Assembly (NCBI GenBank): GCA_037447605.1
Contig: CM074809.1
Span: forward strand, 362,689 to 426,688
Direction of reading: 5' to 3'
DNA: 64,000 nt
From: Zygnema circumcarinatum SAG 698-1b
Lineage: Eukaryota; Plantae; Zygnematophyceae
In this document: positions 5,946-55,663 of the stretch, piece by piece
Layout: the number at the start of each line of letters is the position of its first letter
Numbering within the stretch: the first letter of the stretch is position 1
Made by a program: the position numbers and the translations under genes
Notes under the pieces: generated by a model
Database searches by the model: none
What the model saw: the letters and a program-made list of their open reading frames with translations, nothing else
Told to the model about the DNA's origin: nothing

Positions 5946-8820
5946 ATGGCGAGTGCTACCGCGCATGCTATTCTGCCAAATGTGCACTGCTTGCGCCGGG
6001 AAGCTCTGCATGAGAGCAAGACCTCTACTGAATTTTCTAGCAGAGTAGCTCTTGGAGGTGCGGAAAGCTTGTCGAAGAGGCAGATCTCTTTCCAGAAACC
6101 TTGCGATCAAAAGTTTGCGCTGCACGTGCAAGCTGCAGGAAAGACTACGAAGTTTCAGACTCAAGCCTCGAAACCAAAGAAATCTGAAGAAGATGAAGCA
6201 AGTACTCGTCCAGCAATTAGCAGTTTTTTGGCTTTAAGGCCTCCCACCTTGACTGCTCTCCAGCTCTTTGGCCGGCGACAACTGGATTCCAACACGGTTT
6301 TTGTAACAGGGGGCAGTGGACTAACGGGAGCGCGCATTGCATTAGAGCTCTTGCATGAGGGATTTCGAGTGAGGGCGGGAGTCCCTGATTTACGCGAGGC
6401 GCAAGAGCTTGCACAAATTGCTTCTCAATATCAGGTATTTACAACAGAAATAAATAAGGAACGGCATTGTTATGATAAGTTCACTCAATGAAGTCAGAAT
6501 GAGGAAAAAGTTTGAGCGGATCGATTTAGAGTGCGAATCCTTTAAGCATGTACACTACCCAAATGATGAAAGTTACAAATGGACAGTTTGCATTTTCAGA
6601 CATTAAGATCGGTAATAGCTTGTCGAACTATAGTTACACTTGTGCTAGTCTTATGATTATAGTTGTAAGGATGACTAAAGATGTGTACGATGGATAACTT
6701 CTTACTCGTAGCTATGGTTGTTGCTGTGATATGGCGTACTGCGCAGCTAATCAGTGCGGAGGAAGCAAAGCGTCTGAATGTGGTGGAGTTCAACGTGAAT
6801 GATACAGAGCTAACGGCAAAAGCGATAGGCAATGCAGGAAAAGTGGTGGTCACTATTGGCCCCTGCGAGCTCGGACCTACAGGGAAGATCACAGTTAGCG
6901 ATGCTGCAAAAATATTCGAGGCAGCACAACTCGCTAAGATCAAAAGTTTTGTCCTCGTGTTGGAAGCTGGTGGCTTCGGATCGCTAGCTAAAGGACCAGA
7001 GGGCTTCTTTGCAAAGCTTTTGTCATTTCTCAACGTGTTCAAGAAGAAGGACGAGGTTTCTCTCTCGGAGTTGATTGAACGGATAGTTGATAGTGAAGTG
7101 GATTATACTCTGATACAGACGGGGGCCTCTGAAGGAGTTCTTGACTCCTATGGGGCCACACACAATATCGTGATTGGCCCGGAGGGAGCAGCGCTCGGGG
7201 GCAAGGTGTGGACAGAAGCCATTATGCTCGAAACGAAAGATGCCTTCCGAGTTTTCTGCTGCATATTTCTGACTAGTTGAAGCTTGTCCGACCTTTTGCA
7301 TGGTGGAGGTGCTGGGACTTCGTCTTTTCAAGATCTGTCAAAACATGACATGCATATGACTACTTTTTTGATTTTTAAAATTCCTGTTTTTTTCATTCAG
7401 ATTTCAAAACTTCAAGTTGCATCAGTTGTAGCAAATTCTCTCGCCAATCCTGCCGCCACGGAGAACAAGGTATAGTAGTAAAAACTATTTCCTGAAAGAA
7501 ACTTCTGAAGAATTCTGGTTTTCGTGGCACTGAACAGCATAACTAGCACTTGGTTAGGGTGGCCTCACCGCTAGCTTAGAATGATATTATGATGATGTGA
7601 CTTTTGACATACAGATCGATATGCAACTATTTCGCTATTTGTATGTTTGTGCTACCATTGTAAAGCAGCTTTAACGGTGAATGTGAGCTGCTTCTGACCT
7701 TGGAAAAGCTGGATTTTGGAAAAGCTGATTTCTGACAGAGTGGCTCTTGCCGTTGTTGTCAGATTTTTGAAATCTCCGCCAGCATGGATGCACCTGCAGT
7801 GCCTTTGGTGCAGCTTTTCAGGTATGCTTATCAATGTCTAGTCAATTTTACGTTCAGTGGCGTGTAAGCTTGCTATTCCAGGGCTCGTCTGAAGAGGAGC
7901 AAATGGAAGAGATATAATTTGTTTCACCTTGGGGCTTGAGCTTCGTACTACCATAGTCAGAAGTAAAACCTTGTAGCTGTTGAGCTGTTGATTGAAAAGC
8001 GTTCTTTCTCGTGTGCAGTACTGTAGAAGTAGATGGACGAAGAGCTGCAGCAGCAGAAGCAAAAGCATCAGCTGAAGCTGAAGAGAACGAACGACAGGTA
8101 CGGGCTCAGGCAGAAGAGGCTGCCAAGCTTGCCGTGGCAGAAGCTCGTGCTGCAGCAGAGGAAGCAGCTGCATTGGAAGCAGAGGCTCGCCAAGTTGCAG
8201 GTAAGAGTGCAAACGATTGATTACGTTAGAATGAGTTTTTTAGAGGAACGGGAAGTAGACTGGCTTCTTGTTATGTGGTGATAGTCGTTCGTTCAGAACT
8301 GGCGACAATATACCAAATCATCGCTCAGGTATTGCTCAGCCTTTGTGTAAATCTTGCAGCCGAGGAGGCCAAAGCAGCTACCCAGGCAGAGAAGGCGCTT
8401 GCAAAAGCAAAGGCGGTTTCTGCATCAGTCGAGGAGCTGACAACATCGTTAGCGCAAGTTGAAAAGGGGGCCGAGCCTGCCCCCAAAGCCAGTCTTCCAT
8501 CCTTCAACTTTGGAAACCTTGGAGCTAAGGTTCTCTCCTCTGTTCAGTCCGGTTTGGCAAAGGAGAGCGAAAACGGGAACGCACTCACCTCTGCAGAGCC
8601 TCCGGTAACTGCTGAGAAGCCTGCCCCTTCAGCTGCAGAACCCCCCACTGGGCTGAGAAAGCTGAGGCAGAGAGGTGAGAGGAGAAAAGCTGCCCCTCCC
8701 CCTCCTCCCCGTCCTGCTGCACCAGCAGCACCCTCCGCACCTGTAGAGAAGAGGAAACTGCTGGGAGTGTTTCAGCAGGAGACAACCTTTGTAGATGCCT
8801 CTGATGCCGGGGATTTCTAG
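5946..8820 (+). CDS. PTAC16: Plastid transcriptionally active 16-like NAD(P)-binding protein, 6 exons
   Basis: Exons 5946-6434, 6747-7205, 7401-7469, 7763-7821, 8019-8200 and 8360-8820, with compatible phases. Motifs TVFVTGGSGLTGARIALELLHEGFRVRAGVPDL, KAIGNAGKVVVTIG and the C-terminal GVFQQETTFVD match plant pTAC16. Confidence 0.92.
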
Positions 8821-9690: not shown

Positions 9691-10137
9691 TTCCGATCGA
9701 AATGACCATGCGAAACAAAAATAATCAAGGAACTGACACGAAATTTAACCGAACACCATCCATCATAAGCAATGAAACAAGACCAGAAGATGAATCTGCA
9801 ATCCAACAGACCTGCACTAAAACTAAACTTCTTCTTTTTAAACCGAAAGGAACTAGAGTAACCACCAAAGCGAAAAGGAGACTTAGTTGGTACAATAAGT
9901 CCACTTTCGGGCTTCACTTCCTGCGGAAAGGAGAGGGAGTCTTCCCCCTCCCCTCCCCTCCCCTCCCCTCTNNNNNNNNNNCCCCTCCCCGCAGGTCGCG
10001 TCCCAGCCCCATGGGTGGCCTCCCTCGGTTCCATCAGGGCCAATTTTGCTGACATGACGCCGACGTGGCTGTCACTTCTGCGATATGTGCCACGTCACAT
10101 GTTAAGTTCCACAACGCATAATCCCGGTTCCCACTTT

Positions 10138-10500
10138 GGGTGGGTTTCCATCAGCGTTTTTTCGCCGACGTGGAGGTACAGGCGTAGTTTTGGAGGATGA
10201 TGTGGCGCCGTCGTGGAGCCGACTAGGACCGACGTGGAGGTACAGGCGTAGTTCCCCAGAACTCACCTCAGGGTGGGTTTCCATCAGCCCGTTTCGTAAC
10301 GAGCTCGTTACGGGCCACGTAGGACGCCGTTTTGCAGATAAAAAGCCGAGTTCCATCAAAACGCCGTTTTCCAATCAGCGATCGCCACGTGTACGATATG
10401 AAGCGTCCGCCGTGGCCCACCGCGGTTACCGCACGCGCGTCGCTGCCGACAGTTTTTTAGGGTTTGCAGGAAGCGACGGCCGCCGCCACTACAGCCGCCA
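10138..10500 (+). repeat. GC-rich dispersed repeat family, copy 1 (terminal motif GGGTGGGTTTCCATCAGC)
   Basis: The motif occurs at 10138 and about 10272. The blocks CAGGCGTAGTTCCCYAGAACYCACCTC and CCGTGGCCCACCGCGGTTACCG are shared, in reverse orientation, with 18000-18473. Confidence 0.75.
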
Positions 10501-11498
10501 CCTCCGCTCCCTTCTCTTCCCTCCTCCCCTGCCTTTCGCAACAACGCCATTCGCGGCGTTTGCCTCGCAATTCACCAGCATTAAATATTATTGTTGTGGT
10601 GGAAGTTGTGGAAAGGACATGTGACAACATACGTCTCTCTTTTCGTTTTTTTCCTTCTCCAAAATGCAAGCATAAAAAAATGAAAAGAATGAGAATGAAA
10701 GCAAAAATCTGACAGTGAAAATTTGCCAATCACGTACTCAAATTAATTAAACAAAAAGAATAATAATAATTACAATCCTAATCAATTGCTTCTAAAGCGC
10801 GGAGGAGCGGTGACACAACCATTAGACCTTCACCACAGAGTGCGATCTCCTTCCTCCCTTTAATAGAAAATCTCCATCGGTGCGAGAAGTAAAGGGAGAG
10901 CCCCCCCCTCTCCCGGCATGCTCCAGAGCCGTCTCCAAACCCTAATCCTAAGGCGAGAATGGGAAGAGAGGCCCCTCGGTGCTCATCCCTGTCTGTTTTA
11001 GGGTTAGCATCGGAGCCCTGCGCTCCGCAGCCCTTCCTCTTGTAACGAGCTTTCACGTCGTTTTGGCTGACTGGCTCATGGAATGCTCGTTGTTTGTTCT
11101 GAGGATCTTGGGCTTCTCCTCGCGGTTTTTCACAATAGTCGGCAGCCATGGCTGCACCTTGGGAAGCTTCCTCGGCGCTGAAGCGACCTGGGACCACGAC
11201 CGGTGGTCACCGAGCGTTGACGGCTTCCAGCCAGCGTGGCAGTCGCACGCTGGCGGATCTTTGGTAGCCACGTGGCGGCACGCGAATGGTCGTAATGGCG
11301 TTACACCACCTCCGGAGCAGCATTCTGTGCACCGGCTGCAGCGAGGCTCCCCCCCTCCCCACCGTCGATCGCCACGATCGGAATTGCTGCAGCTTCCCGC
11401 CCCCCGGCCGCCCACCCGCCCTGCAGCGTCCTCCCAGGTACGGCGCAGCGCCCGAGCGTTCGACGCCGGCCGAGCGCGCGGTCACCGCGGTGCCGATT

Positions 11499-11577
11499 GC
11501 CACGTAGATGCCACGGTGGCGCCACGTCTGCCACGTCGATTCCACGTCTACATGTCCATCCACGTCGGCGCCACGTC
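11499..11577 (-). repeat. Array of CCACGT (ACGTGG, G-box/ABRE-like) motifs
   Basis: Seven (G/T)CCACG(T) units, several spaced 11 bp apart. Confidence 0.7.
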
Positions 11578-11637
11578 ATTTACAACCACTGAAATTGAAC
11601 TTCGGGTGTGCTCGCCGCCGCTTGCCCACCGCCCATT

Positions 11638-12240
11638 AGGGGGTCTCAGACTTAAACAAAACTTGGTAATCGTACAGCTTGGTAATTGGTAATCGGGGAT
11701 AGAGAAATTGGTAATAATGATTACTTTGCCGAACCTGTGCCGAACCAAATGCAAGTCAACGCTGGTAATCGTACAAGTCCGAAATTGGTCATGGGCGCCC
11801 CAGGACTTGGTAATCGTACAGCCTATCACCAGAAACTTATCACCACCCAAAACGGTGGTTTTCGGTCTCCGCGAAAGGAAATGGTAATGAAACGGGCGTC
11901 ACCATGACGTCCACACCCCGGCCTGACATCCCCCTCCCCGCCCGCCGCCACAGGGGTCCGGGTTTGCAATTCAAAATTGCGGCATCTGACGTCAGGTATC
12001 GGCGATCTACCCGCGCCGTTCGCAGCCTTTTTTTAAGTTTGAGACCCCCCCGCGCGGGCGAAGTTGGTCATCGCGCCTTTGGAAATTGGTCATACCGGCA
12101 AATGCGGAGTGGTGATAAAGTCACGTCGCGTCACGATCACGGTTACGTTCGGGGGGCGCGAGACTGGTGAAGTTGACTCGAAAACTTGGTAATCGTACAG
12201 CTTGGTAATTGGTAATCGTTTTTTAAGTCTGAGACCCCCT
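11638..12240. mobile_element. 603-bp non-autonomous TIR element (PIF/Harbinger-like MITE)
   Basis: Perfect 19-bp TIRs (AGGGGGTCTCAGACTTAAA at 11638-11656, reverse complement at 12222-12240) are flanked by a 3-bp duplication ATT (11635-11637 and 12241-12243). The interior has many TGGT(A/C)AT motifs and no ORF with recognisable similarity. Confidence 0.85.
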
Positions 12241-12663
12241 ATTGAAATTGAACATCGTGTCCTGGTACCGGTAGGTCTAGAGTTCGATCTCTGCTGGAGG
12301 CGTGTTTGCTACACAGCCCGAGCGAGCGAGGGAGGCCCTGCTTGCGGAGAGCGGTGTGTGGCGGCCGCGNNNNNNNNNNTCTTTTTTTCTATCCATCCAT
12401 TTATGCAGCGTCGTTTACTTACCTCTTTCTTCTATTGCAGAAATGGATCCAAGAATTCCTCATCTCTATCCTCATCATCTAGGGTTGAGTCCAGAAGACG
12501 AAGCGTGGAGCGTATTTGATGATGCCTCTTATCTAGTGAAGAAGAATGGATGTATTATAGGAGATGAAGAGCTTAAAAGGACAATATTTGCAGCGGAAAC
12601 GACAATTGAAGATGAAGAGGAACAAAGACGCGACATGCCTATAAAGCCAAGGTATGCTATTGG

Positions 12664-12880
12664 CTTTCTGCTTTCTGCTTTTCACTTTCTGCTTTCTGCT
12701 CTGTGCTTTCTGCTTTTTGCTTTTGGCTTNNNNNNNNNNATTCTGCATTCTGCATTCTGCATTCTGCATTTTGTATTCTGCATTTTGCATTCTGCATTCT
12801 GCATTTTGCATTCTGCATTCTGCATGCTGCATTCTGCATGCTGCATTCTGCATTCTGCATTCTGCATTCTGCATTCTGCT
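12664..12880. repeat. Heptamer microsatellite (CTTTCTG)n grading into (CATTCTG)n in a Crypton intron; repeated at 13603-13743
   Basis: Directly visible tandem 7-mers; they are the source of the spurious MQNAEC and ILHSAFC ORFs. Confidence 0.95.
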
Positions 12881-14455
12881 TGTTGTTTGCTGCTTTCTCT
12901 CTTTCCCTCTTTGCTGCCCGATCTCTCCTTCTCTCCCTCCTTACTTGCTCTCCCCCTCCCCCCCCCTCCCTCCTCCTCCCTCTCTAAATGTCTTTTAGTT
13001 TTTTGTGTCTACAGGATGTTCATTGATCCTAAACGAGGGACTGTTAAGGATAAACTAGCGCTTTCAGACTTTCAAAAGTTATTAAGGTATATGGGGTCAT
13101 TCAACAACGAAACATATTTAAAGTATGGTAGTATGGTAGCTACAGCAAAGGCAATGATGCTTCGAGGAGATGACCAAAGATCAATTCGGTTGGTCGATCT
13201 ATTTATTGATGATATGGCTACAACAGCTATTGGCCCATCTGAATGTACTGTCCTAGGTGTGGTGTCACGTGGGGGGAAAAAGAACTCGGGAGGAGCAGTC
13301 CAATATGGGGCTTCCTTTAGACATTCAGATCCGGAATTTTGCAGTCATGGATGGATATCACGATATTTGTTCCACAGGTTCATTGTATCAGAAGAACCTC
13401 CTCCAGATCTTCGGAGCAACTACCTTTGGTGAGTCTAAACTTATCCAATCAACTATTATTTGTGTATTTTGTTTTATATTTTTGCACAAATGTATTGTTT
13501 TTATTGACACGTTTGTTTGTTGATTTGCAGGTACAAAACCTTATTGTTTCCATCCAAAGACTCCACTGAGGTTGAAATGTGTCGTGAAGCACNNNNNNNN
13601 NNATTCTGCATTCTGCATTCTGCATTCTGCATTTTGTATTCTGCATTTTGCATTCTGCATTCTGCATTTTGCATTCTGCATTCTGCATGCTGCATTCTGC
13701 ATGCTGCATTCTGCATTCTGCATTCTGCATTCTGCATTCTGCTTGTTGTTTGCTGCTTTCTCTCTTTCCCTCTTTGCTGCCCGATCTCTCCTTCTCTCCC
13801 TCCTTACTTGCTCTCCCCCTCCCCCCCCCTCCCTCCTCCTCCCTCTCTAAATGTCTTTTAGTTTTTTGTGTCTACAGGATGTTCATTGATCCTAAACGAG
13901 GGACTGTTAAGGATAAACTAGCGCTTTCAGACTTTCAAAAGTTATTAAGGTATATGGGGTCATTCAACAACGAAACATATTTAAAGTATGGTAGTATGGT
14001 AGCTACAGCAAAGGCAATGATGCTTCGAGGAGATGACCAAAGATCAATTCGGTTGGTCGATCTATTTATTGATGATATGGCTACAACAGCTATTGGCCCA
14101 TCTGAATGTACTGTCCTAGGTGTGGTGTCACGTGGGGGGAAAAAGAACTCGGGAGGAGCAGTCCAATATGGGGCTTCCTTTAGACATTCAGATCCGGAAT
14201 TTTGCAGTCATGGATGGATATCACGATATTTGTTCCACAGGTTCATTGTATCAGAAGAACCTCCTCCAGATCTTCGGAGCAACTACCTTTGGTGAGTCTA
14301 AACTTATCCAGTCAACTATTATTTGTGTATTTTGTTTTATATTTTTGCACAAATGTACTGTTTTTATTGACACGTTTGTTTGTTGTTTTGCAGGTACAAA
14401 ACCTTATTGTTTCCGTCCAAAGACTCCATTGAGGTTGAAATGGGTCGTGAAGCAC
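12740..14455 (+). repeat. Near-identical 853-bp tandem duplication across a 10-N gap
   Basis: 12740-13592 matches 13603-14455 (offset 863). Six substitutions were seen, all in the last ~150 bp. Confidence 0.92.
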
Positions 14456-15275
14456 AATCAAAGTTCATGAAAAAAATCATTGAGCACTTAGATCTCAGCT
14501 GTTCAGGCACCTTGCACATATTCCGTGGCGCGGCAGCAAGGGAATGTTTCGCGCACTCTTGTGGGTTTGATCAAATCCAGGTGGCAGGGAGGTGGGGCCA
14601 AGCTTCAAATAAATCCCTTGCAATCAATTACCTTTCTTCGATTGTCCCTCCAGTCTGTAGGGTGCTTGCAGGATTCAAAAAAGAAGGCGATGATTATTTT
14701 TTGGAGCGTTCTTGTCTTAAACCAAATGAAGCGCTTGTGAATATGGTTTTCCCATTTCTTCCCAACCTTGAAGCTACTGTACAGCAGGTAATATGTCATA
14801 CTGCATGGATCTTTTGGCTGGAAGACAGAGAAAGGGTGTGAAAGAGATTGAGAGGAGGGGAAAGGGTTAACGTTATGTGTTTTTATGTGTAGATTACTCG
14901 TGGAGTGCCTTTTAAGTCGCGGAATCTTTCAGCAGGAGGCTTTGTGGACATGCTGCGTTATTTTGCATGTGTTTTATTGCAAGATGCAGTGTTCGCTCCA
15001 CAAATTCCACTGTTCGCGAATCATCCATTCTTCCAACGGTGAGCAATGGGGATGGTCTTCCTTTTAGGGTTGCTGCTGCTTTCAGGAATGTTATTGCTTT
15101 TCCTGTTGCTGCCCCTTTTGCACTTGCTGCTTTTAGTGCTCCTTTCTCTGCTTCTGCTGCTGCTGCTCCTGTTTCAGCTGCTTTTGCTGTTGTTGAGAAA
15201 ACACTGCTACAACTGTTGTTGCTGCTGCTGTTGTTGAGAAAACACTGCTACAGCTGCTGTTGCTGNNNNNNNNNN

Positions 15276-15362
15276 GCGTGTACAAACCACAAGAGCTCCT
15301 CTGAAGGTGGGTATGGCCAACAATTATCTCTCTGGTCAATTGCCTGAGTATGATAAGGGGAA
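15276..15362 (+). other. Possible exon fragment with a plant-type LRR-like motif
   Basis: One frame reads RVQTTRAPLKVGMANNYLSGQLPEYDKGK and ends at a GTGAGT donor. NNYLSGQLP resembles the LxxNxLSGxIP LRR consensus. It is a single short match between two gaps. Confidence 0.3.
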
Positions 15363-17979
15363 GTGAGTATTATCATCTGAAACCTTTCTTTTTTGGAGAA
15401 GGTATTAGAGGTAGGGCCTATTGCTGAAAATTAGATCGTTCAAAAAAAAGCATTTACTTTAGAAGGGTAAGTGGTGGATACAAAGGTAAGAAGGACGAGA
15501 AGTTTGCTGCCACAGAAAGAGTGAATAAGGGAGGCTGAGATATGGGAATGGAGTAGTTGATTAGCGGATGCGAGTGTGCCTAATTAAATAAATAACTGCG
15601 ACTGATACCTTGTATATTGTTGTGTAGGTGTGCGTGGCCAAGGTAGATGACGATGACTCGGAGCACCTGAAGGACTGCATTGTACTCACTACGCCACCGT
15701 GAGTCTTGGGGGATGCATGGATCACTGAGACGATGATATCAAAGCGCACGCAGGGGATGGAGTTAATGGATGTGTTTGCTGGGAAATACAGGAACTATGG
15801 CGCAGCTTCACGGTGTGGGGGCTAGTGAAGCTTCTGCAGTACTGTTTTGGGGATATCTCTTGTGTGGCTTTCCGCTAATTGGCTTCATGGTGATCTGCTT
15901 CGCACTCTTCTTCTGATGCTNNNNNNNNNNAGTTGTCTAGCAAGCGGAAGGTCGGAGTCGTCATGCAAGTGTGCGTAATTTTAATACAAACGACTGAATG
16001 TTTTCCCTTTTATACTCTTGTGCAGGCGTGCGTGGCCGTGCCAGACGACGATTCGGGGCAGTTGCAGTACTGCATCGTACTCAGTACGGGACGGTGACGC
16101 TGGGGGAGAACTTTGTAGAGCAGTGCTACTACGGGAAGGGGGCCCTCTTCTAGCACTTTGCGGTTCTTAGGCACTTCCAAAATAAGAGCATTCTAAAAAC
16201 CTGCAAGTATCAAATTCGTGTATCGTGAATGGGCAGTTACGTAAATCTGAAATTAGAATTGGACACCCCGGAGGTGGGCAAGGCCCTAGCTGAACTGAGG
16301 GTTGAATTGTGCCTCCACTAGTGAGAAATGGCCGACTCTGTAAATAAAAGGATGGGTTCTGGATGAAAGGCCATGTCAAAACTCAAGACATATGCTGGGG
16401 TCGTTTGTGAGAATTTCAAACGCTTAGAGCAACGGGAGAAGGAGGGAAAGCAGAGAGAGGCAGGAGAGGAAGAGGAGGGATGGAAAGGATGGAGGGAGGG
16501 AGGAGGGAGGGAGGGAGGGAGGGAGGGAAGGAGGGAGGGAGGGAAGGAGGGAGGGAGGGAGGGAGGGAGGGAGGGAGGAGGGAGGGAGGGAGGGAGGGAG
16601 GGAGGGAGAGAAGGGAGGGAGGGAGAGAGGGAGGCGATCTCGAGAGAGACGTGGATTGTTGCCCAAAAGAGTGCCTTCCCCTACCCCACTCTCTACTTCC
16701 TCTCCTTCCCCCTTTCCCTTTCTTTCAGCATTTACTACTTCCTCCCTCTTTGTTACATTCCTTGGCATTGCATAACTGGGAACCACTGTCCATGGTCCTA
16801 TCTCGCCATCACTTGCTGGTAAAACATGGGCGTCTGCGTGAGAGACCAATTTTTTTCTTTTCGCCGATAGTCACATAAATAGAGCGAGAGATAGTGGGGA
16901 GGGGGGGGGGGGGGGGGGACGAGCAGCAGCAACCACAGCAGGCAAAAGGCAAAGAAACACAGCCACACGGAACCAAACGCAACAAACACAAACCAAAAAA
17001 AACCGCGTAACCCCAGAAATCAAAGGCAAATGAACACATTGGTAGCACAAACAAACACATACAAAACCAGATAGGTGCACCTCATGCAAATGACGCAACC
17101 AAACCTGTCCTCGCGTATCCGTATGCGAACAAACACACAAAATACATATATAAAGCGAAAGAATACAATTAAACACACTATATACACAATTACACGCAAA
17201 TAGACCAACCAAATAAATACTAATGCATATAAGAAGTGAAGGACTCGCAACCACACAACCAAACTCAAACGTAACACATGTTAGACAATTAATATTGCAT
17301 GATTCCCTTTTCATGACTTTTGTGCCTTTGGGAAATGAAGGACATGTGTGTAGACACGACCAAAGAATCGCAAAACGCAGAGGAGCTAAGAGCGATTGGT
17401 AATGGAAGTGGCATTGATCTCATGATGCCGAAGCCAAGAAAAGTACGTGGAAAGGAGGTGGAAAGCTACGCCGAGGCACAACAACGCCTACGCTTACGCG
17501 TTTGGTACGAGTCTCCTGATAACCACATGGCTGTGTGCGAGGGTGCAACATGGGCGGGTGCGTGCGAGGCGTCCCTTGGCCGCGGGCCGCGGGCCCGAAG
17601 CGCGGCGGCTACCGGCTACGGCTACGTGTACGCTCGAGTTACAGGTTACATGCTGCGGTTACGGCGGGGGCTACAACGTACGAGGGCTACGGTGTACGGA
17701 CGCATAGAGCCCGAACTCGCGAGGGCGCCACGTAGGCGCCACGTAGGCGCCACATAGGCGCCACGTCGGACAACTGATTCAGTCGTCGCATCGTGACCGC
17801 ACATTGAGCGTGCGAAGCAAAATCGACGGCAGGCGGCGCGCTGCAGGATGTTAGTGAAACTCTAGCTTCTTTCGGTCCCTGCAGCGAATTCGCACGTCCG
17901 TACCATGGTTTTGCGCTGCACCGAGCCGCGTTTTTTGCGGCCCCAACGCTGCAGGCACGTGTGGAGCATAGTGAATACC

Positions 17980-18473
17980 TGTGGAACGGTGCTCGTTACC
18001 ACGTGGCAGCCACGTCGGCGCCACGTTGGCGGAAACGGCCTCATGGAACCCATGGGTCGTCGTCCATTACGACGCCACGTCGGAATAACGGGCTGATGGA
18101 AACCCGCCCTCAGGAGGTGGGTTCTAGGGAACTACGCCTGAGTTTTCCAATCGTGCGCCGCCGCGTGGCGTTGAAGATCCGTTTGAGATGCCACGGGGGT
18201 ACGGCGGCCACGCTGGCGCACAGCCGCCAACGCGCGGTGACCGTAGGTCGGGGTGGCGGCGGCGGCGGTGGCGGCCGTACGGTAGCGCCTCCGCTCAACC
18301 CTTCCCTTTGGCGACGCACGTACGGTAACCGCGGTGGGCCACGGTGGACGAGTAAGTGTGTCCACGTGGCGTCCTTTGATTGGCTCGCGCGACCTCTGAT
18401 GGAACCCGCAATTCTCCCTTCATGACTCTAATCCGATGTGGCGGTACAGGCAAACGCTGATGGAAACCCACCC
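17980..18473 (-). repeat. GC-rich dispersed repeat family, copy 2
   Basis: It carries two GCTGATGGAAACCCRCCC motifs (about 18092 and 18456). The 17980-18110 part is the reverse complement of 47931-48096, and other blocks match 10138-10500. Confidence 0.8.
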
Positions 18474-25407: not shown

Positions 25408-41520
<16,113 letters not shown>

Positions 41521-42423
41521 AGGAGACGCATCCTGATCTCGCACAGCATTCACTGCTCGAAAGGGGGGCAGCAATAATGGGTCTAATTTTGATAATATTA
41601 CGGAAGTCCCACCTTTGAATTTCGGAATTTTGAAATTTCGCCGTCAGTGCGTGCCAGTCCAGTTTCCACTCCCATTTTTTTTTTTTTTTTTCCAATGGAA
41701 TCTTTCTTCAGTCCAAGGATAACGGCTAGCTGTTTTTTTCAACAAAAAAAAACCCGTTTTGTAGCGTGGGAGTGAGGAAGTTCCTTTTTGATAGCCGGCG
41801 ACCTGTGTCCATAGCTTTGTACATTTCTGTAGCACGCAAGGTATTAGGCTCACCTGGATTTTGTGAATGATTGTATAGCCCACCTCACCTTGGAGATGCA
41901 GCTCCCAAATATGAACAGTTTTTACTCTTGTTCTTGTGGATGGGTTTGAAGAGGAAACCTGTGTAGAAGGGGCCACTGTAGAAGCAATACAGCGTTTGTA
42001 GCACAAGTCGAGAAGTTGAGCCTGCCGTCAAAAAGTTGCAATGTACTCTTATCAAGTTAGACAGATTCAAAACAGTGATTCGAAGATTAGAACTCGAGGA
42101 AAACTTGAAATTTTGAAAACTTGAGGAGCGAAGGAATCTTGTGGATCTATCTCATAGAAAAGGCCATGTACGGATGATGATGTGATATGATGTGATGTGA
42201 TATGATCTGTCATTTTATGGGTCGGTATGCGCACAAATGAACCTGAACCTGGCACATCATGGCAGAGGAGGTGCTCGTCAACATGTACAACATGAGAAAG
42301 CACATGGATACATGGACATGAGCTCGTCCAGATATACGAATAGGGTGCAAAGTGTCATGGTGAAAGTAAACATCCCAATGCAACATCAACATCATCATCA
42401 TCATCATCATCACCATCATCATT

Positions 42424-42454
<31 letters not shown>

Positions 42455-44664
42455 CAATCATCTTGATCATGATCATCATCATTGTCCATGTGTAACACAC
42501 GAAGCTTTCTCTCTAACCAAGTAAGCAACTTGTAAAGAGAAAGCCCCAAAAAGGGCCAAACAGCAAATATTTGAAGTTTCCTAATTCCTACTTGTGACAC
42601 CTCTCTTATCGCCCCAACGCCCTAAAAACCTGAAAAAGCTAAAAAAGACAAACAGACAGACTCTTGTACATTCAAACAAAGCATTTCCAACTCCTCGAAT
42701 TATCAACTCTGCCCTTGTTCCTTGTGTGCTGTGAATTTTTAAGACCCCTAAAATATCAACATCTCTCTTTTCTCCCAAATCGCTCCCACTCTTTCTGCCA
42801 AGATGCAGTCAACCACCCCTAAAACATTGCAACACGTCGTTACAAATGATGCTAAAAATAAATCAAACAACACAAAAATTTTCCTAAGAAATCCTTGATT
42901 GATACCATTGGTTTTCTTCAGTCAAATTTAACGCAGTCGCTCGTTGACTTGCTTTTAACGCAATCGCTCGTTGACTTGCTTTGACCTCTGCCTGCCCCCC
43001 ATGGTAGTGACTTTTCTCTCTCCCTCAAGTCTCGGATCTCTCTTCATTCACACAAAAAGAGGTTCCTACACCCCCTCTTCCCCCAAATAGCGACCTCTTC
43101 CTCTCCTTAAAGCCCCGGCTCTACTTTTACTCTCACAAGATGAGGTTCCCTCCTCACTCTCTCCCCGGTAATGACCTCTGTACCTCCCTCAAATACGGGC
43201 TCTACCTTCACTTTCATAGGTAGAGGTACTTGCCTCCCCATCCCCTTTGTAGTGACTTTTTCTTCTCCCTCAGGTCCCGACTCTCGCTTTGTTTTCATAG
43301 GAAGAGGTTCCCACCCCCTCCTCCCCCAAATAACGACCTCTTCCTCTCCTTCAAGTCTCGGCTCTCCTTTTACTCTCATAGGAAGAGGTTCCCACCCCCC
43401 CTTCCCCCAAATAAGAACTTCTTCCTCTCCCTCAAGTCCCGGCTCTATCATCCTCATAGGAGGAGGTACCTGGTCCTTTCTTCCCCTGGCAAAGGCCTCT
43501 CCNNNNNNNNNNGTTTCTCTTATCCCCTTTTCGTTTTTCACTCTCTAACCCTCCCTTTACCCCCCCACCTTCTCACCCATCCACTCTCCCACCCCCCTCC
43601 CTCCCTCCCTCCCCTCCCTCCCTCTCTCTCTCTCTTCCCGGCACAGGTCTGCGCAAGTGTCAGTGCAGATGCCGGCAGTTTGCAGGAGCTCGTACAATGG
43701 AATGAGCTCTACGGAGAGGGAGGCTCTCGCAGGCGGACCACTCTCTCCTACTTCATGTGAAGGAGACGCATCCTGATCTCGCACAGCATTCACTGCTCGA
43801 AAGGGGGGCAGCAATAATGGGTCTAATTTTGATAATATTACGGAAGTCCCACCTTTGAATTTCGGAATTTTGAAATTTCGCCGTCAGTGCGTGCCAGTCC
43901 AGTTTCCACTCCCATTTTTTTTTTTTTTTTTCCAATGGAATCTTTCTTCAGTCCAAGGATAACGGCTAGCTGTTTTTTTCAACAAAAAAAAACCCGTTTT
44001 GTAGCGTGGGAGTGAGGAAGTTCCTTTTTGATAGCCGGCGACCTGTGTCCATAGCTTTGTACATTTCTGTAGCACGCAAGGTATTAGGCTCACCTTGGAT
44101 TTTGTGAATGATTGTATAGCCCACCTCACCTTGGAGATGCAGCTCCCAAATATGAACAGTTTTTACTCTTGTTCTTGTGGATGGGTTTGAAGAGGAAACC
44201 TGTGTAGAAGGGGCCACTGTAGAAGCAATACAGCGTTTGTAGCACAAGTCGAGAAGTTGAGCCTGCCGTCAAAAAGTTGCAATGTACTCTTATCAAGTTA
44301 GACAGATTCAAAACAGTGATTCGAAGATTAGAACTCGAGGAAAACTTGAAATTTTGAAAACTTGAGGAGCGAAGGAATCTTGTGGATCTATCTCATAGAA
44401 AAGGCCATGTACGGATGATGATGTGATATGATGTGATGTGATATGATCTGTCATTTTATGGGTCGGTATGCGCACAAATGAACCTGAACCTGGCACATCA
44501 TGGCAGAGGAGGTGCTCGTCAACATGTACAACATGAGAAAGCACATGGATACATGGACATGAGCTCGTCCAGATATACGAATAGGGTGCAAAGTGTCATG
44601 GTGAAAGTAAACATCCCAATGCAACATCAACATCATCATCATCATCATCATCACCATCATCATT

Positions 44665-44695
<31 letters not shown>

Positions 44696-45347
44696 CAATC
44701 ATCTTGATCATGATCATCATCATTGTCCATGTGTAACACACGAAGCTTTCTCTCTAACCAAGTAAGCAACTTGTAAAGAGAAAGCCCCAAAAAGGGCCAA
44801 ACAGCAAATATTTGAAGTTTCCTAATTCCTACTTGTGACACCTCTCTTATCGCCCCAACGCCCTAAAAACCTGAAAAAGCTAAAAAAGACAAACAGACAG
44901 ACTCTTGTACATTCAAACAAAGCATTTCCAACTCCTCGAATTATCAACTCTGCCCTTGTTCCTTGTGTGCTGTGAATTTTTAAGACCCCTAAAATATCAA
45001 CATCTCTCTTTTCTCCCAAATCGCTCCCACTCTTTCTGCCAAGATGCAGTCAACCACCCCTAAAACATTGCAACACGTCGTTACAAATGATGCTAAAAAT
45101 AAATCAAACAACACAAAAATTTTCCTAAGAAATCCTTGATTGATACCATTGGTTTTCTTCAGTCAAATTTAACGCAGTCGCTCGTTGACTTGCTTTTAAC
45201 GCAATCGCTCGTTGACTTGCTTTGACCTCTGCCTGCCCCCCATGGTAGTGACTTTTCTCTCTCCCTCAAGTCTCGGATCTCTCTTCATTCACACAAAAAG
45301 AGGTTCCTACACCCCCTCTTCCCCCAAATAGCGACCTCTTCCTCTCC

Positions 45348-47368
45348 TTAAAGCCCCGGCTCTACTTTTACTCTCACAAGATGAGGTTCCCTCCTCACTC
45401 TCTCCCCGGTAATGACCTCTGTACCTCCCTCAAATACGGGCTCTACCTTCACTTTCATAGGTAGAGGTACTTGCCTCCCCATCCCCTTTGTAGTGACTTT
45501 TTCTTCTCCCTCAGGTCCCGACTCTCGCTTTGTTTTCATAGGAAGAGGTTCCCACCCCCTCCTCCCCCAAATAACGACCTCTTCCTCTCCTTCAAGTCTC
45601 GGCTCTCCTTTTACTCTCATAGGAAGAGGTTCCCACCCCCCCTTCCCCCAAATAAGAACTTCTTCCTCTCCCTCAAGTCCCGGCTCTATCATCCTCATAG
45701 GAGGAGGTACCTGGTCCTTTCTTCCCCTGGCAAAGGCCTCTCCCACAACAACACCTACCCCCGGCTCCACCTTTACCCTAACTGGTAAAGGTGTTCGAAC
45801 ATTTGGCTGACCTTCTTTCTCCTTCTTGAAAGTCCCACTTTCAGTCATTAAGCATCGCCTCTTCTGCTCCACATTGACAATCTCATTGTTCAGCTCCTCC
45901 CCCTCTTCCTGCATCGCCTGCATGTCGTCAAAACGATACTTTCTCTTCAGGAGTGGCTGCTGATCGGCATTCCTCGCCTTCCTTGCCGTCTCACACACCT
46001 GTGAAAACACATTATCATTAGCATCATCATCGCCGTCGTCCTCATCGTCATCGTCGTCATCATCATCATCATCAATCAATCATCAATCAATCATCACTCA
46101 ATCATCAATCAATCATCATCAATCATCATCAATCATCACCAAACAAATCATCAATCAATCATCAATTAATCAATCATCAATCAATCATCATCAATCATCA
46201 TCAATCATCATATATGCATCAATTATCATGCATCAAACAATCAAACATCAAACACAAAAAAAAAAAAACATCAGCATTATCATCATCGTCATCATCATGA
46301 AGCTTACCTCGAGTATGTTATCAGCCGGTTTCCTCGTGCGCTCCTCCACTGACACCTTGAGCCTTTTCGCCTCCGCCTCGCCGTCATACACAGCCATCCT
46401 CTTCATACCAACAACCTCTCGCGCTCTCTGTTCAGTTGCACTGAATTCCGCTGCCTGCTGCTCCGCCTGCCTCTTTTTGTTCAGCATATCCTCTCGCTCA
46501 GCACGGAGGGCCATCATCTCTCCAATCCTGCGATCGAAGCCTCTCTTCCCCTGCTCCAGCTTCATCATCATCTGCTTCGAGTTTGCCTCCACCTGTTCAA
46601 AGAGCAGCAGAATAGACTGTGATGAAAAATGAGCTCAAAGGAAACAATCACGATGAGGAACTCAGTTAGCAGAATTACGACTGCCACGACGAATAAATCT
46701 ACGTTATGGCAAGCAGCAAGCAAAGCGTGGTCTAATTATTAGGTGCTGCGCATGTCCGCCACGTGGCAAGCTCCATCCGAAATCACGGTGACATTCTCTC
46801 TCCATTGCTTATAGATTCTCCGAGCGATCAAGTGTAGAGAGAGAGAGATAGAGAGAGAGAGTGAGGGAGCGAGAAAGAGAGAACGAGAGCGAGAGGGAAA
46901 AAAATAAGACCGTACCTGTTTTGCCTTCAGTAGAGGTTGGCTCCGCCATGCGGAGATTCCCGCCCTTGGAACTGCCACATGCTCCGTGTGGAAGCGGATG
47001 CCCCTAAGCAGGGCCCTCCGCTCCTCTGCATGCTTCTCTCTAGTCTCTTCATCAGCGGCGTTCCGCGCATGCCATGGCTGGCGACTTTCCACCTTCAATG
47101 ATTCTTTGGCGCCTTCGTCCTTCTCCTTTTCACCGGCCTTTTCCTTTGCTTCCGACTCCTGCTCATGCTGCGCCGTTGGTGGAGCAAAAGCTGTGGCTTT
47201 AGCGTGGGATCGCATGCCCTTGATGCTCTCCATTACGGCCTCCTCCTTCGCAGGGGCAGGCCGCCCAAAGAACCAGCTCCAAAGGGATCCTGCAGAGCCT
47301 ACTTTTGCAGAGGCCTTTGCAGGGCTGCCCTTGGGAACGAAGACCGTTTTCATATCGAAAAACGACAT
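45348..47368 (-). CDS. Uncharacterised 462-aa protein: charged/coiled-coil middle and C-terminal ~27-aa tandem repeats
   Basis: Three phase-0 GT-AG exons, 47368-46916, 46592-46308 and 45998-45348, join into one open frame starting MSFFDMKTVFVPKG. No family was recognised. Confidence 0.7.
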
Positions 47369-47930: not shown

Positions 47931-48096
47931 GGGTGGGTTTCCATCAGCCCGTTATTCCGACGTGGCGTCGTAATGGACGACGACCCATGGGTTCCATGAG
48001 GCCGTTTCCGCCAACGTGGCGACAACGTGGCGCCAACGTGGCGACAACGTGGCGCCAACGTGGCTGCCACGTGGTAACGAGGCACCGTTCCACAAG
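47931..48096 (+). repeat. GC-rich dispersed repeat family, copy 3, with a tandem ACGTGGC array
   Basis: Begins GGGTGGGTTTCCATCAGCCCG and is the reverse complement of about 17980-18110. ACGTGGC occurs at 48014, 48025, 48036, 48047 and 48058, followed by CCACGTGG at 48068. Confidence 0.85.
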
Positions 48097-51600: not shown

Positions 51601-54600
51601 TCCTCTACCGACACTCCTATCTCCGCCTCCTGCTGTGAGTTTAAATCCACCATCTCTACTGTTGTATCTCTGGTCCGTCCTGCCATATATGTCTCATATT
51701 TCTCCTCACATTCCCCCCTCGGCCTCTCAGATTCTTTCTCCTCCTTCCCGCCGTTCGGCTGTACTTCTGAGTTTCTTTTCAACGTGGCATCCAAACCTGA
51801 AACCGGTTAAGTCACTGGTTAATGCATGCTTTTCTTAAACTTCTGACGGCTTTGAGAACGTATCATGCATCCTTTCAATCTTATGGGTTCTGCGAAGAGT
51901 GTTCTTTTTTTGGCAAAGAAAAACTTCCATTTTACTTGTTCAAAATGCATCTTCGAGCATAAGCAAGTGTTACGCTTGTGAAACGCTAACTTGTGATGTG
52001 CGCCTTAGTGCACATGCAAACAGGCTATTGAGAGTGAGCATAAACGAAAATACCAGAAAGCATTTCAACACTGTTCAATAGCAGTCCCACAAAGGCGCGC
52101 GAACTCCCCTCTTTGCCTCGTTCATTGATAGAGAGTTGGAGTAGATGCTTCTGCACGGGAGAATGCCAATACTAGCACCAGTCAGGCCTTCTTGCTCCCT
52201 CCCTCCTTCCTGCACCTCTATCTCCTCTCTCCCTTTCCCCATTCTCTCCTCTCTCCTCTCATCGCTCAATTCTCCTTCACTCTATCCATTCTTTGCCTCG
52301 CCTTTATTCTCTCTGTAACTTCTCCTTTCTCGTCTCCTCAATCCTACTCTCCTCTACTCTTTCTACTTTCCTCTCCTCCCATCGTTTAACTAACCGACTC
52401 CAAACCAACCTGATTTCCTTCGCTTAAAAATGTCACATTCTCCAATAATCGCAGACACCGGAGAAGCGTAGCAAGCCCATATCGCGCATTTTGTTCTTCT
52501 GAAACATCTTCAAACAGTGTCGGCTCTCCTTCCTTCACCCATACATCATCCGCTTTCAACCATGTCTGTTCAACCACCACCCTTTAACTTTTCAGGGCTC
52601 GCTACCTCCCTAATTTTTTTTCCCCTCATCCGATAAACAACCTTCAATTCACACACTAACAGGGCCACAATGATCTAGCCCAACTGGACACCCACTGGGG
52701 CTTCATTCAAATCCATCGTTTCGAGCTTTGTCGTCTAGAAAAAGCATTTGAAACTACAACGGTTGATGGGTTTTTAAGGATTTTACCTGCAGCCGCACAA
52801 TAGAGAGATTGACGAGTTCACATACTGCAGTGAGACCTCCTTCTTCTCTCAACCGGTCTTTAAAGCGTCCAACTTTCACTCCGCCACTACCACCATTCAC
52901 ATCTGTTCCCTCACCCTCGAACAGTTTGATCTGTAAGCTTCACTAGAAACAGGATGTCAGATTTAAGAAGCTAATGTATACCAGTTCATGCAAAAAGTCT
53001 TCAGAAAAGAGTACATTCATATAAGGCTCATGAATCTTTCAATTCCAGCATCATCTAAAGGGGTTGTCACTCTAAAGTGATTGACCTAAAGCCACTTACA
53101 ATCGTATTTTTGGTCAACATGCAAACTGACTTGTCTTGTTGTCACCCAGCCAACAGGCAGTATTCATCAAGATATACAAACATTTATGCAACAAAGAAGG
53201 GACACATCTATGTATATGCACACCCCTCTCCCCTACCTTCTCTTTTTCCTTTCTTCGTATTAAATACATACTGTATATACATGCTATATCCTTCCTTTAA
53301 TGCACATTTTATCGCAAACACGACTTTCCCACCATCGAGTACTGTTGCTGAGCTGCACGCGCTCTCCAAGGTCATTAAAGCCAGCCATGAAGGGCTGACG
53401 TCATCTCCAATCACCACCCCAAATCGAGAGAAGTCTGCAGCACTTCCATCCTTGACTCGTTCCCCCACCTCGACTTTCTCCCCCTTAGAATTCGAATTCA
53501 TGTTAAGTTTAAACAATGCTTGGACTCGTGTGACCATTGAAGCTCCGACTCTTTCACTGGCCGACTTTTTGAAGCTGCCTGGGCTGCGAATCCCTTTGGG
53601 AGTTCCCACTTCGCCAGATTTCATTTCATGAAATTCAAGCAAACCCAAGAGAAAATGAACGAATTTTATCGAGTCGAAAAGGACTTCATCGAAACCCTGC
53701 AAAACAGCCTCAATTAAAAATGAATTAGTGCAAGCACCCAAGTTTTGACTTGGGACGTGATGCAGATTTCAGTTTGGATTCAGTTTCAGTTACAAGATCT
53801 GGAATTTCTTGGCCGTTTGATTATAACCAGGAAGCAACTTGTACTCTCCTTCAGCATCATCGCTAGTGAGTACGACGAAGTAGCAGAAAATGACAAAGTG
53901 AAGATGATGTTATTCTGGATTCACGCCTGTCATATTCTTGCCTGCACATCATGTTTCTCCCACTTAAACATACCCTTGCCCATCTTACTGAAAACTCTGA
54001 TAAAAATTCCTGCATGTCTATTCTTCTCACCACAAAAACTTGCACCAACTTCAACCCATCTCACGATCAATTGCTAGAGGAAAAGACCAGAGCTTACATA
54101 TCACATGCTTAGGGGGATGGCGGCGAGAGAGGAAACGAAAGGGAGAGTGAGGGGGAAAGAGAGAGAGGAAAGAGAGATTACGTCGCTTGCTAAGAAAAAG
54201 AGAACAGCTGCTGCCGCCAGTGTTAAGGGAGGATCATCCGTCGGCAAATCCACGATTGCCTCCACTAGAGGACGGGCTAGCCTGCCGATATCACAAAAAG
54301 TTATCAAGAGAGTACTTTTAGAAACGTAAAGAACTCGGAATATTGTTCTCAGCAATGCAAAGGCAATTCGGTATAACCAGATCACTTTATCCACCCCTTA
54401 TCGTGTTCAAAGGATGACAAAAACTTGCAAAAAAAAATACAAATACTGACGACACCTCAAAAAGTCTAAGAAAAAAATGTCACAACACTGACATCCTGAA
54501 AAACTTAAGAGCCCCAAACCCCGCGAACCCTGAACCCCTCAACAACCAAACCCACTCACCCTTGCGTTTTCAGAAGCCTCCTTCGATCTATGGACCTGCA

Positions 54601-55663
54601 CAGCTGCGCCATTGCTGCCATGCTCGCTCGAAGCACTCGCAATGGCTGCCCTTTTCGCAGTCCATCTATGGCAAAGTGAACTTCATCAACATGCTCAATC
54701 ATCTCCCCACTCTCCTGAGCCTCCATAAGAGAAGCGGAGGGGGGAGCTGCAGGAACTGCAGTTGTCACCCAATCGATTTCCCCCTTCTGCCGGTGTCGGC
54801 TTCCTACTCCACCTCCCTTCCTCTCACTCCTTCCAATCACACTCCTCTTCCGCACAATGCCCCCACCAAGTGCGTCTCCAGACCCCATCGAACTTCCTTC
54901 TAGAAGCAGAGACTGCATTTTTAGAGTCTTCCGTGACGATGACGGTGCGGCTTCTCCTTTTTCCAGCTTCCTTTTCCTCACCTGACTGTGAGAGGGAGAC
55001 GAAGGAGCAGAATCGGAATTGAAAAGAGGAATTTGTTTCCTACGTTTAAAGACTTCATCTGCATTGTCTTCTCGGAGAGGTTGTGAATTATAACTTGAAC
55101 GTTTCGGCGGCGGTGGCATATAATTTCCCAGCTTCGTGGAAGCAGGTGCATTTTCCGGGTCACAGCCTGATAAGGGATGCTCCTCTATTTCTTCTTCTTC
55201 ATCCGTTTGACTGAATCGATATTCTTCAATGCTTGATCTGCATCTCAATGACTGGCTCAAGTCTAAATTCTCAGCTTGCGATTCCTGCGCAGGCGACGAG
55301 GACGCGACCGAGAACAAAACAACAGAGAAAAGTAGTTAATGTAAAGGAGCTCAATGTAGTATCGTATGCATGTTAAGAAACCATGCTATGAACTCTATGC
55401 TTTTGGACCAACAAGTATTTGAATGCACACAGGTTGAAACATTTGAGACGCGCAATGCAGGCACCGTTTCCAAAAAAAAATGTAATACAAACGCAGAATG
55501 TAAACCAAAAAAAAGCCGATTTATTTGTTCTTGCCTGAGAAGAAAAAGCATTGAACAAAAGCGATTCTTGTGAACTCCAAAAGGACTCTTGCGAGCCTTC
55601 CTCTGACTGGCTGCTCCGCCCTCCTCCGCACCTCTGCCGTCGCTGATAAGTTCGGATCAGCAT
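48684..55663 (-). CDS. WAPL: Wings apart-like cohesin release factor, 14 coding exons
   Basis: Exons: 55663-55535 (MLIRTYQRR; GC donor), 55284-54560 (MEAQESGEMIEHVDEVHFAIDGLRKG), 54281-54182, 53696-53333, ~52902-52787 (FKDRLREEGGL), ~52565-52410 (LLRCLRLLENVTFLS), 52150-52054, 51796-50859 (EDCLVSAVK), 50598-50297 (MNLTNEN..GC; LGVLVNLIEK), 50086-49921, 49738-49635 (GEKEAEAMMLEAYAALLLAFLS), 49241-49160 (LVPVLEHF), 48773-48684 (AFH...*). The motifs match plant WAPL; the listed set has 13 segments, so the exon count is approximate. Confidence 0.93.

Follow-up and report, generated by a model that had tools for sequence, protein, structure and literature searches.

The window analysed here is a 64,000-nucleotide stretch of the genome of the streptophyte alga Zygnema circumcarinatum SAG 698-1b (GenBank assembly GCA_037447605.1, contig CM074809.1, positions 362,689 to 426,688; all coordinates below count from its first letter). 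Judging by its sequence, the locus at 12443-15038 is a real piece of a Crypton-type (NDC10_II-type) tyrosine recombinase gene whose active site is intact. On balance, we regard it as probably one copy of a Crypton-type DNA-transposon gene with introns, of the NDC10_II/CryptonF kind and belonging to a green-algal lineage split from the named fungal CryptonF elements. The locus is bounded by two unsized gaps, 12370-12379 (60 nt upstream) and 15266-15275 (227 nt downstream), and the missing 5′ and 3′ parts of the gene most likely lie within them.

Gene structure and catalytic residues

The gene model was built from a reading of positions 12000-16000 together with the table of open reading frames (ORFs), and consists of four exons on the + strand. 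All similarity searches were run exon by exon, and the catalytic alignment took the exons in as separate fragments.

The recombinase domain is split between exons 2 and 3. Exon 2 (13878-14291), which begins after CAG|G, ends TG|GTGAGT and holds the first half of the domain, by itself matched model positions 37-128 of the Pfam family NDC10_II (PF16787), scoring 38.7 bits where the cut-off is 26.3 (E = 7.9e-10). Exon 3 (14394-14787, ending CAG|GTAATA) holds the second half and aligned colinearly with the same family at model positions 152-264, below threshold (E = 0.058). The post-Tyr helical segment (F..L...V.LQD...HP.F) is encoded by exon 4 (14893-15038, after TAG|A), which matched a local hidden Markov model (HMM) of the relatives' post-catalytic block with E = 1.6e-8. 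When all six frames of the window were searched with the relatives' HMMs, similarity to the family broke off precisely where exon 4 ends. A profile of the relatives of the window gene matched the structures of yeast Ndc10 (PDB 4aco and 6gyp, E = 5e-20); exon-level phmmer searches against PDB sequences gave only noise, and NCBIfam gave no match.

All six residues of the active site were found. The catalytic Arg lies in the MLRGD motif (R50 of exon 2, codon 14026-14028) and the Lys in GGKKN (K88 of exon 2, codon 14140-14142). Exon 3 supplies the His and the second Arg of HIFR (H41, 14515-14517; R44, 14524-14526), the Trp of GRW (W67, 14593-14595) and the nucleophilic Tyr of NYL (Y79, 14629-14631). 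The residues that define the tyrosine recombinase superfamily (R, K, H-x-x-R, H/W and Y) are thus present in order and at the usual spacing. Within exon 3, H-x-x-R is followed after 23 residues by the Trp and after 12 more by the Tyr, a spacing that we take to be close to that of Cre. An exhaustive HMMER search of 1.84 billion representative proteins with exon 2 returned 305 proteins at E ≤ 1e-3, the best of them 51% identical. Among the 46 full-length relatives found with exon 2, the residues are kept in 45 (R), 44 (K), 41 (H), 43 (R), 41 (W) and 43 (Y) cases, and the full RKHRWY pattern is shared by the window gene and 37 of the 46.

An earlier reading of the window from its letters alone, hereafter the sequence-only reading, had proposed an intron-containing Crypton-type tyrosine recombinase with a complete catalytic set. 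The NDC10_II match, the RKHRWY residues and the splice sites bear this out, and the five motifs are found where they had been placed, in exons 2 and 3. NDC10_II and GCR1_C had been named as the models against which the protein should be compared; the first was matched through exon 2, and the second was not matched in the window.

The splice junctions are canonical and in phase, with split codons for Arg (AG+G) and Trp (TG+G). Exon 1 (12443-12651) starts with the ATG at 12443, holds 69 codons plus the split Arg codon and ends AG|GTATGC. The 5′ part of intron 1 (12652-12729) runs from the donor GTATGC through a (GCTTTCT)n-type microsatellite into a gap at 12730-12739; its 3′ part (13603-13877) contains a (GCATTCT)n microsatellite and a C/T-rich tract before the acceptor CAG. 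Intron 2 (14292-14393) is 102 nt long, of phase 2 and bounded by GTGAGT and CAG, while intron 3 (14788-14892) is 105 nt long, of phase 0 and bounded by GTAATA and TAG. As had been claimed for the spliced product, the translations of all four exons are free of stop codons, and exons 2-4 together provide 317 open codons.

On our reading of L003, an environmental contig that carries a related gene, introns 1-4 have identical codon positions and phases in the two genes. Intron 1, for instance, is of phase 2 in both and lies three codons before an I/V-D-P motif. Because of this agreement, the splice model is sound independently of RNA data. The same comparison bears on the end of the assembled gene. 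Exon 4 closes with a phase-2 donor (CG|GTGAGC), and since the donor of L003 has the same position and phase, it is taken as a real intron donor and the gene as continuing past 15038. If intron 4 were left unspliced, a TGA at 15040-15042 would close a protein of about 388 residues. The view that the C-terminus is hidden by a gap is therefore upheld, the last assembled exon ending at a donor placed as in its relatives, and given the conservation of this donor a GCR1_C domain may lie within the gap at 15266-15275.

The sequence-only reading had placed an Ala-rich, low-complexity stretch after the domain, and as coding sequence this stretch did not hold up. All three frames are open across 15069-15265, which is (GCT)n-type, A-poor and contains a 41-bp tandem pair (repeat family D7). 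The AT skew of about -0.4 shows the same strand bias as the microsatellite of intron 1, and the stretch could be brought into the frame of exon 4 only through an intron of 29 nt (15039-15067). The three open frames, the composition like that of the intron 1 microsatellite and the need for so short an intron led us to reject a coding role as unconvincing. The whole of 15039-15265, which runs into the downstream gap, looks like an intronic (GCT)n microsatellite and is probably the start of intron 4.

Assembly gaps and a redundant contig

Exons 2-4, with all catalytic residues, lie on a single gap-free contig (13603-15265). The sequence upstream of it had been overlooked as a redundancy: the block 12740-13592 repeats 13603-14455 over 853 bp, and so carries a second copy of the 3′ part of intron 1, exon 2, intron 2 and the first 62 nt of exon 3. 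The copies are identical over their first 708 bp and differ at six sites within the final 145 bp; intron 2 and exon 3 account for three of these each, and two of the exon 3 differences alter a residue. Each copy starts with the very base that follows a gap. The same arrangement recurs elsewhere in the window, where 41273-43502 is repeated at 43513-45743 (2231 bp, 99.96% identical) across a gap of 10 N at 43503-43512. A real exon duplication is ruled out, since both copies begin at a gap edge and the pattern recurs at 43.5 kb; the 853-bp redundancy is an assembly fault that recurs, overlapping contigs having been linked by 10 N rather than merged. The mismatches between the blocks suggest a second near-identical copy or an allele. 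Redundancies of this kind can imitate exon duplications in this assembly, and gap-adjacent "tandem duplications" in it deserve distrust.

For the gene model, this means that the sequence does not run on across the gap at 13593-13602: position 13592 is really followed by 14456, and one copy of the block must be skipped. The gap at 12730-12739 falls between the two related 7-nt microsatellites and spares the reading frame because it is located within intron 1. Exon 1 sits alone on a contig of 350 bp (12380-12729), and its link to exon 2 rests on the scaffolding, the splice phase, the base composition and the position and phase of intron 1 that are conserved in L003.

Exon 1 is acidic, with 16 D/E against 8 K/R, and its GC content of 41.5%, or 30% at third codon positions (GC3), is similar to that of exons 2-4. 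It matched no Pfam or NCBIfam family and was unrecognised by Atlas. The 70-residue acidic exon that had been described ahead of the domain is therefore present and acidic; it is unrelated to the family. A strong acceptor, with a pyrimidine tract and CAG, has its last base at 12440, so that only two bases separate it from the ATG. It could belong to an intron in the 5′ untranslated region or be a sign of missing upstream exons.

Relatives and phylogenetic placement

The best matches to the window gene were fragments on short eukaryotic contigs (L001-L005, GC 38-39%) from one environmental metagenome series (GROS21). In tblastn comparisons, identity to these environmental contigs was 47-51% for exon 2, 35-38% for exon 3 and 36-47% for exon 4, with E values of 1e-26 to 4e-28 for exon 3 and of 1e-6 to 5e-6 for exon 4 against L001 and L003. 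The gene at 1100-3731 of L003 and those of L001 and L004 represent at least three paralogues with 83-92% protein identity; they are complete-looking and intron-rich and have an intact recombinase. They are an undescribed multi-copy relative of the window gene. An N-terminal domain is encoded by two upstream exons in L003 and its paralogues, whose downstream exons give a weak GCR1_C-like match. Multiple copies are found among the relatives both as the three paralogues of the metagenome series and as a 19-member cluster for the protein P0154.

The named relatives closest in kind are green-algal. One cluster (P0010/P0153) comes from the Chlamydomonas chlamydogama transcriptome MMETSP1392, and another pair (P0005/P0155) is like OEZ86_004450 of Tetradesmus obliquus, to which P0005 is 92% identical. 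These green-algal and environmental sequences have the same catalytic residues as the window gene. They differ from it at both ends: where they have two N-terminal exons the window has its unrelated acidic exon, and they carry a C-terminal part that is GCR1_C, a DNA-binding domain, or resembles it, with a Pfam match in P0010 and a weak one in L001 and L003.

In a tree of exon 2 made by a quick method (141 rows), the window fell in a clade of 26 rows that stood apart from the other 115 with a Shimodaira-Hasegawa-like approximate likelihood ratio test (SH-aLRT) value of 98. A more careful tree of 47 rows, which is unrooted and covers only about 135 columns, recovered the same split at 99/95 and grouped the window with its environmental relatives at 95/80. 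The named members on the opposite side were all fungal (Tilletia, Penicillium, Rhizopus, Thermomyces, Panaeolus and Rhodocollybia), and those on the side of the window were the green-algal sequences P0153 and P0005. CryptonF elements reportedly belong to fungi and oomycetes (Goodwin et al., 2003). The sequence-only reading had considered that the locus might be a fungal contaminant; this is unlikely because the domain groups with green-algal sequences, outside the named fungal CryptonF rows. The placement likewise argues against a recent transfer from fungi and falls short of proving vertical descent.

The kinship with CryptonF elements (Kojima and Jurka, 2011; PMC3212892) is nevertheless plain in the NDC10_II recombinase domain with its full R-K-H-R-W-Y set and in the introns within the gene. 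NDC10_II was found in all 46 full-length relatives and GCR1_C in 27 of them as well, a combination of tyrosine recombinase and GCR1_C that is the CryptonF layout. As mobile elements, Cryptons are expected to occur in several dispersed copies that share their ends and carry short terminal direct repeats, typically of 6 bp in CryptonF, and to lack a reverse transcriptase and long terminal repeats. What sets the window gene apart from CryptonF is that its domain belongs to the separate clade with green-algal sequences and scores 38.7 bits on a Pfam model that is fungal-based, and that neither GCR1_C nor the N-terminal domain is assembled at the locus.

Mobile element, relic or host gene

We tentatively favour a mobile element because the catalytic set is kept, whereas it is lost in known Crypton-derived host genes, and because of the variant redundant contig, the multi-copy relatives and the composition and borders of the locus. 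The exons have a GC content of 42-44% and a GC3 of 30-43%. They are AT-richer than the flanks (GC 54-56%) and than two ordinary nuclear ORFs of the window, one with a NAD_binding_10 match (6681-7277, + strand, E = 1.2e-8) and one with a match to the start of WAPL (54559-55317, - strand, E = 6e-6). Gaps enclose the AT-richer block (12380-15265), which is set in GC-rich flanks; this counts for a mobile element because assemblers are expected to break at repeat borders. A repeat-rich locus would in this way have fallen apart into tiny contigs, including a redundant one, with only exons 2-4 and, as a leader, an unrelated acidic exon being assembled. By analogy with known Cryptons and other tyrosine recombinases, the enzyme would cut DNA through the Tyr at 14629-14631 and form a 3′-phosphotyrosine link, and the element would be excised as a circle, which would then reinsert at a short matching sequence.

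Several observations weigh against this interpretation. Neither termini nor target-site repeats are seen in the 64-kb window, nor, the redundant contig aside, is a second full copy of the gene. Exon 1 has no detectable kinship to the family: it scored -1.6 bits against the equivalent exon of the relatives, and shuffled versions of it scored higher. In the six frames of the 64 kb, GCR1_C was absent when searched with an HMM made from the GCR1_C regions of 27 relatives (best E = 0.81). So was the N-terminal domain (Y..F..WC..G..P.P helices) when searched with two HMMs, of which the first, made from 33 relatives, gave a best E of 0.45 and the second, made from 8 near-clade sequences, a best E of 0.09; these same models do detect L003 and L004, with E values of 4e-11 and 2e-10. 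A tblastx comparison of 15000-17000 and 11000-12500 with the contigs of the relatives also gave no match. With neither the N-terminal domain nor a GCR1_C-like tail present in the window, the assembled gene is a catalytic core only and not a complete transposase. Finally, a collection of 15 billion proteins, queried with exon 2 and with the exon 2 part of the ORF at 12302-13429, held no near-identical protein and so offers no annotated product of the gene, no hint that it is transcribed and spliced, and no paralogue. The earlier description of the locus as potentially active is not sustained, neither of the two domains being found in any frame of the window.

The same absences are what would be expected if the locus were a truncated relic, in which only the catalytic part of a Crypton gene survived a deletion or a partial insertion, exon 1 was a chance or captured ORF, and the remainder, immobile by itself, was too young to have gathered stop codons. 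The lack of kinship of exon 1 and the stop that would follow directly after exon 4 if the donor were unused would fit such a history as well. We nevertheless consider it unlikely. The 317 codons of exons 2-4 are all open and keep every family-conserved residue, and canonical splice signals are intact at the outer edges, in the form of the acceptor before exon 1 and the conserved donor after exon 4. The unsized gaps also lie where one would look for the missing exons.

A domesticated host gene, in which a Crypton-derived domain with a new acidic N-terminus would serve as a site-specific recombinase or a DNA-binding protein, is in our view somewhat less likely again. It would explain the intact ORF, the conserved introns and a leader exon that matches the other exons in composition, and the presence of ordinary nuclear genes (the NAD_binding_10 and WAPL ORFs) in the same window would suit it. 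Yeast Ndc10/Cbf2, subunit A of CBF3, is of the same fold family, as the profile of the relatives indicates. However, the known Crypton-derived host genes, namely Ndc10, Gcr1 and the DUF3504 genes (KCTD1, ZMYM2-4 and QRICH1), have lost their catalytic residues (PMC3212892), and the window gene is unlike domestication of the Ndc10 or DUF3504 type because it retains all six. Host function is also disfavoured by the distance of the closest sequence among the 1.84 billion representatives (only 51% identical), by the variant redundant contig, which hints at more than one copy, and by the exon 4 donor, which shows that the gene model is incomplete.

Contaminating or mis-scaffolded foreign contigs from a fungus, an oomycete or another alga, placed between host contigs, would account for a gene spread over four tiny contigs bounded by 10-N gaps, for the GC difference from the flanks and for closest relatives on environmental contigs of GC 38-39%, but are very improbable given that the domain groups with green-algal sequences outside the fungal clade, that no sequence in the databases searched is more than about 50% identical, and that the scaffold bears plant-lineage genes.

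Beside the preferred reading of the locus as one copy of a Crypton-type transposon gene, a bolder version deserves mention, to which we give little credence. In it, an old green-lineage branch of CryptonF-like elements would still be active in a streptophyte alga, and this locus would be a functional copy whose ends are hidden in the gaps; in a rarer variant, the host would retain, for its own purposes, a Crypton recombinase that is still catalytically competent and has a new N-terminus.

The surroundings of the locus contain a number of repeats. Patches of a dispersed repeat with GGGTTTCCATCAGC and CGCCACGT motifs flank it in opposite orientation, at 10038-10443 and 17999-18473, and a third site, at 47931-48041, shares 95% identity with one of them. 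We rejected the patches at 10038-10443 and 18003-18473 as terminal inverted repeats: they are not in mirror order, they are 76-100% complementary, and one of them recurs at 47.9 kb. Just upstream of the gap at 12370-12379, an exact 38-nt direct repeat (11658-11695 and 12181-12218) sits in degenerate TTGGTAATCG-type repeats, together with 26-nt inverted arms at 11634-11659 and 12219-12244 (92% complementary). Downstream, a pair of mini-exon-like cassettes, 78% identical to each other (15560-15720 and 15945-16110), flanks a gap at 15921-15930. Each copy runs from an AG acceptor to a GTGA donor over about 24 open codons (core C-I-V-L), and the cassette, which is unrelated to the Crypton family, has only these two copies in the window.

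Further away, 1371 open codons extend over 35740-39855. The other frames and the opposite strand are also open there, GC is about 60%, the sequence is internally repetitive and no Pfam family matched. This looks like openness driven by composition or repeats rather than a gene. The ten largest other ORFs of the window gave no Pfam family beyond NAD_binding_10 and WAPL.

Most descriptions of Cryptons concern fungi, oomycetes, diatoms and animals (PMC3212892), and no description of them in streptophytes was found in the literature searched. This locus alone adds little, being a further incomplete example of an element type that is already known and no proof of an active transposon. If true, a copy with an intact catalytic set would mean that the range of tyrosine-recombinase DNA transposons reaches the plant lineage, especially given its grouping with chlorophyte sequences, and this green-algal grouping would favour a long residence of such elements in green algae over a recent transfer from fungi.

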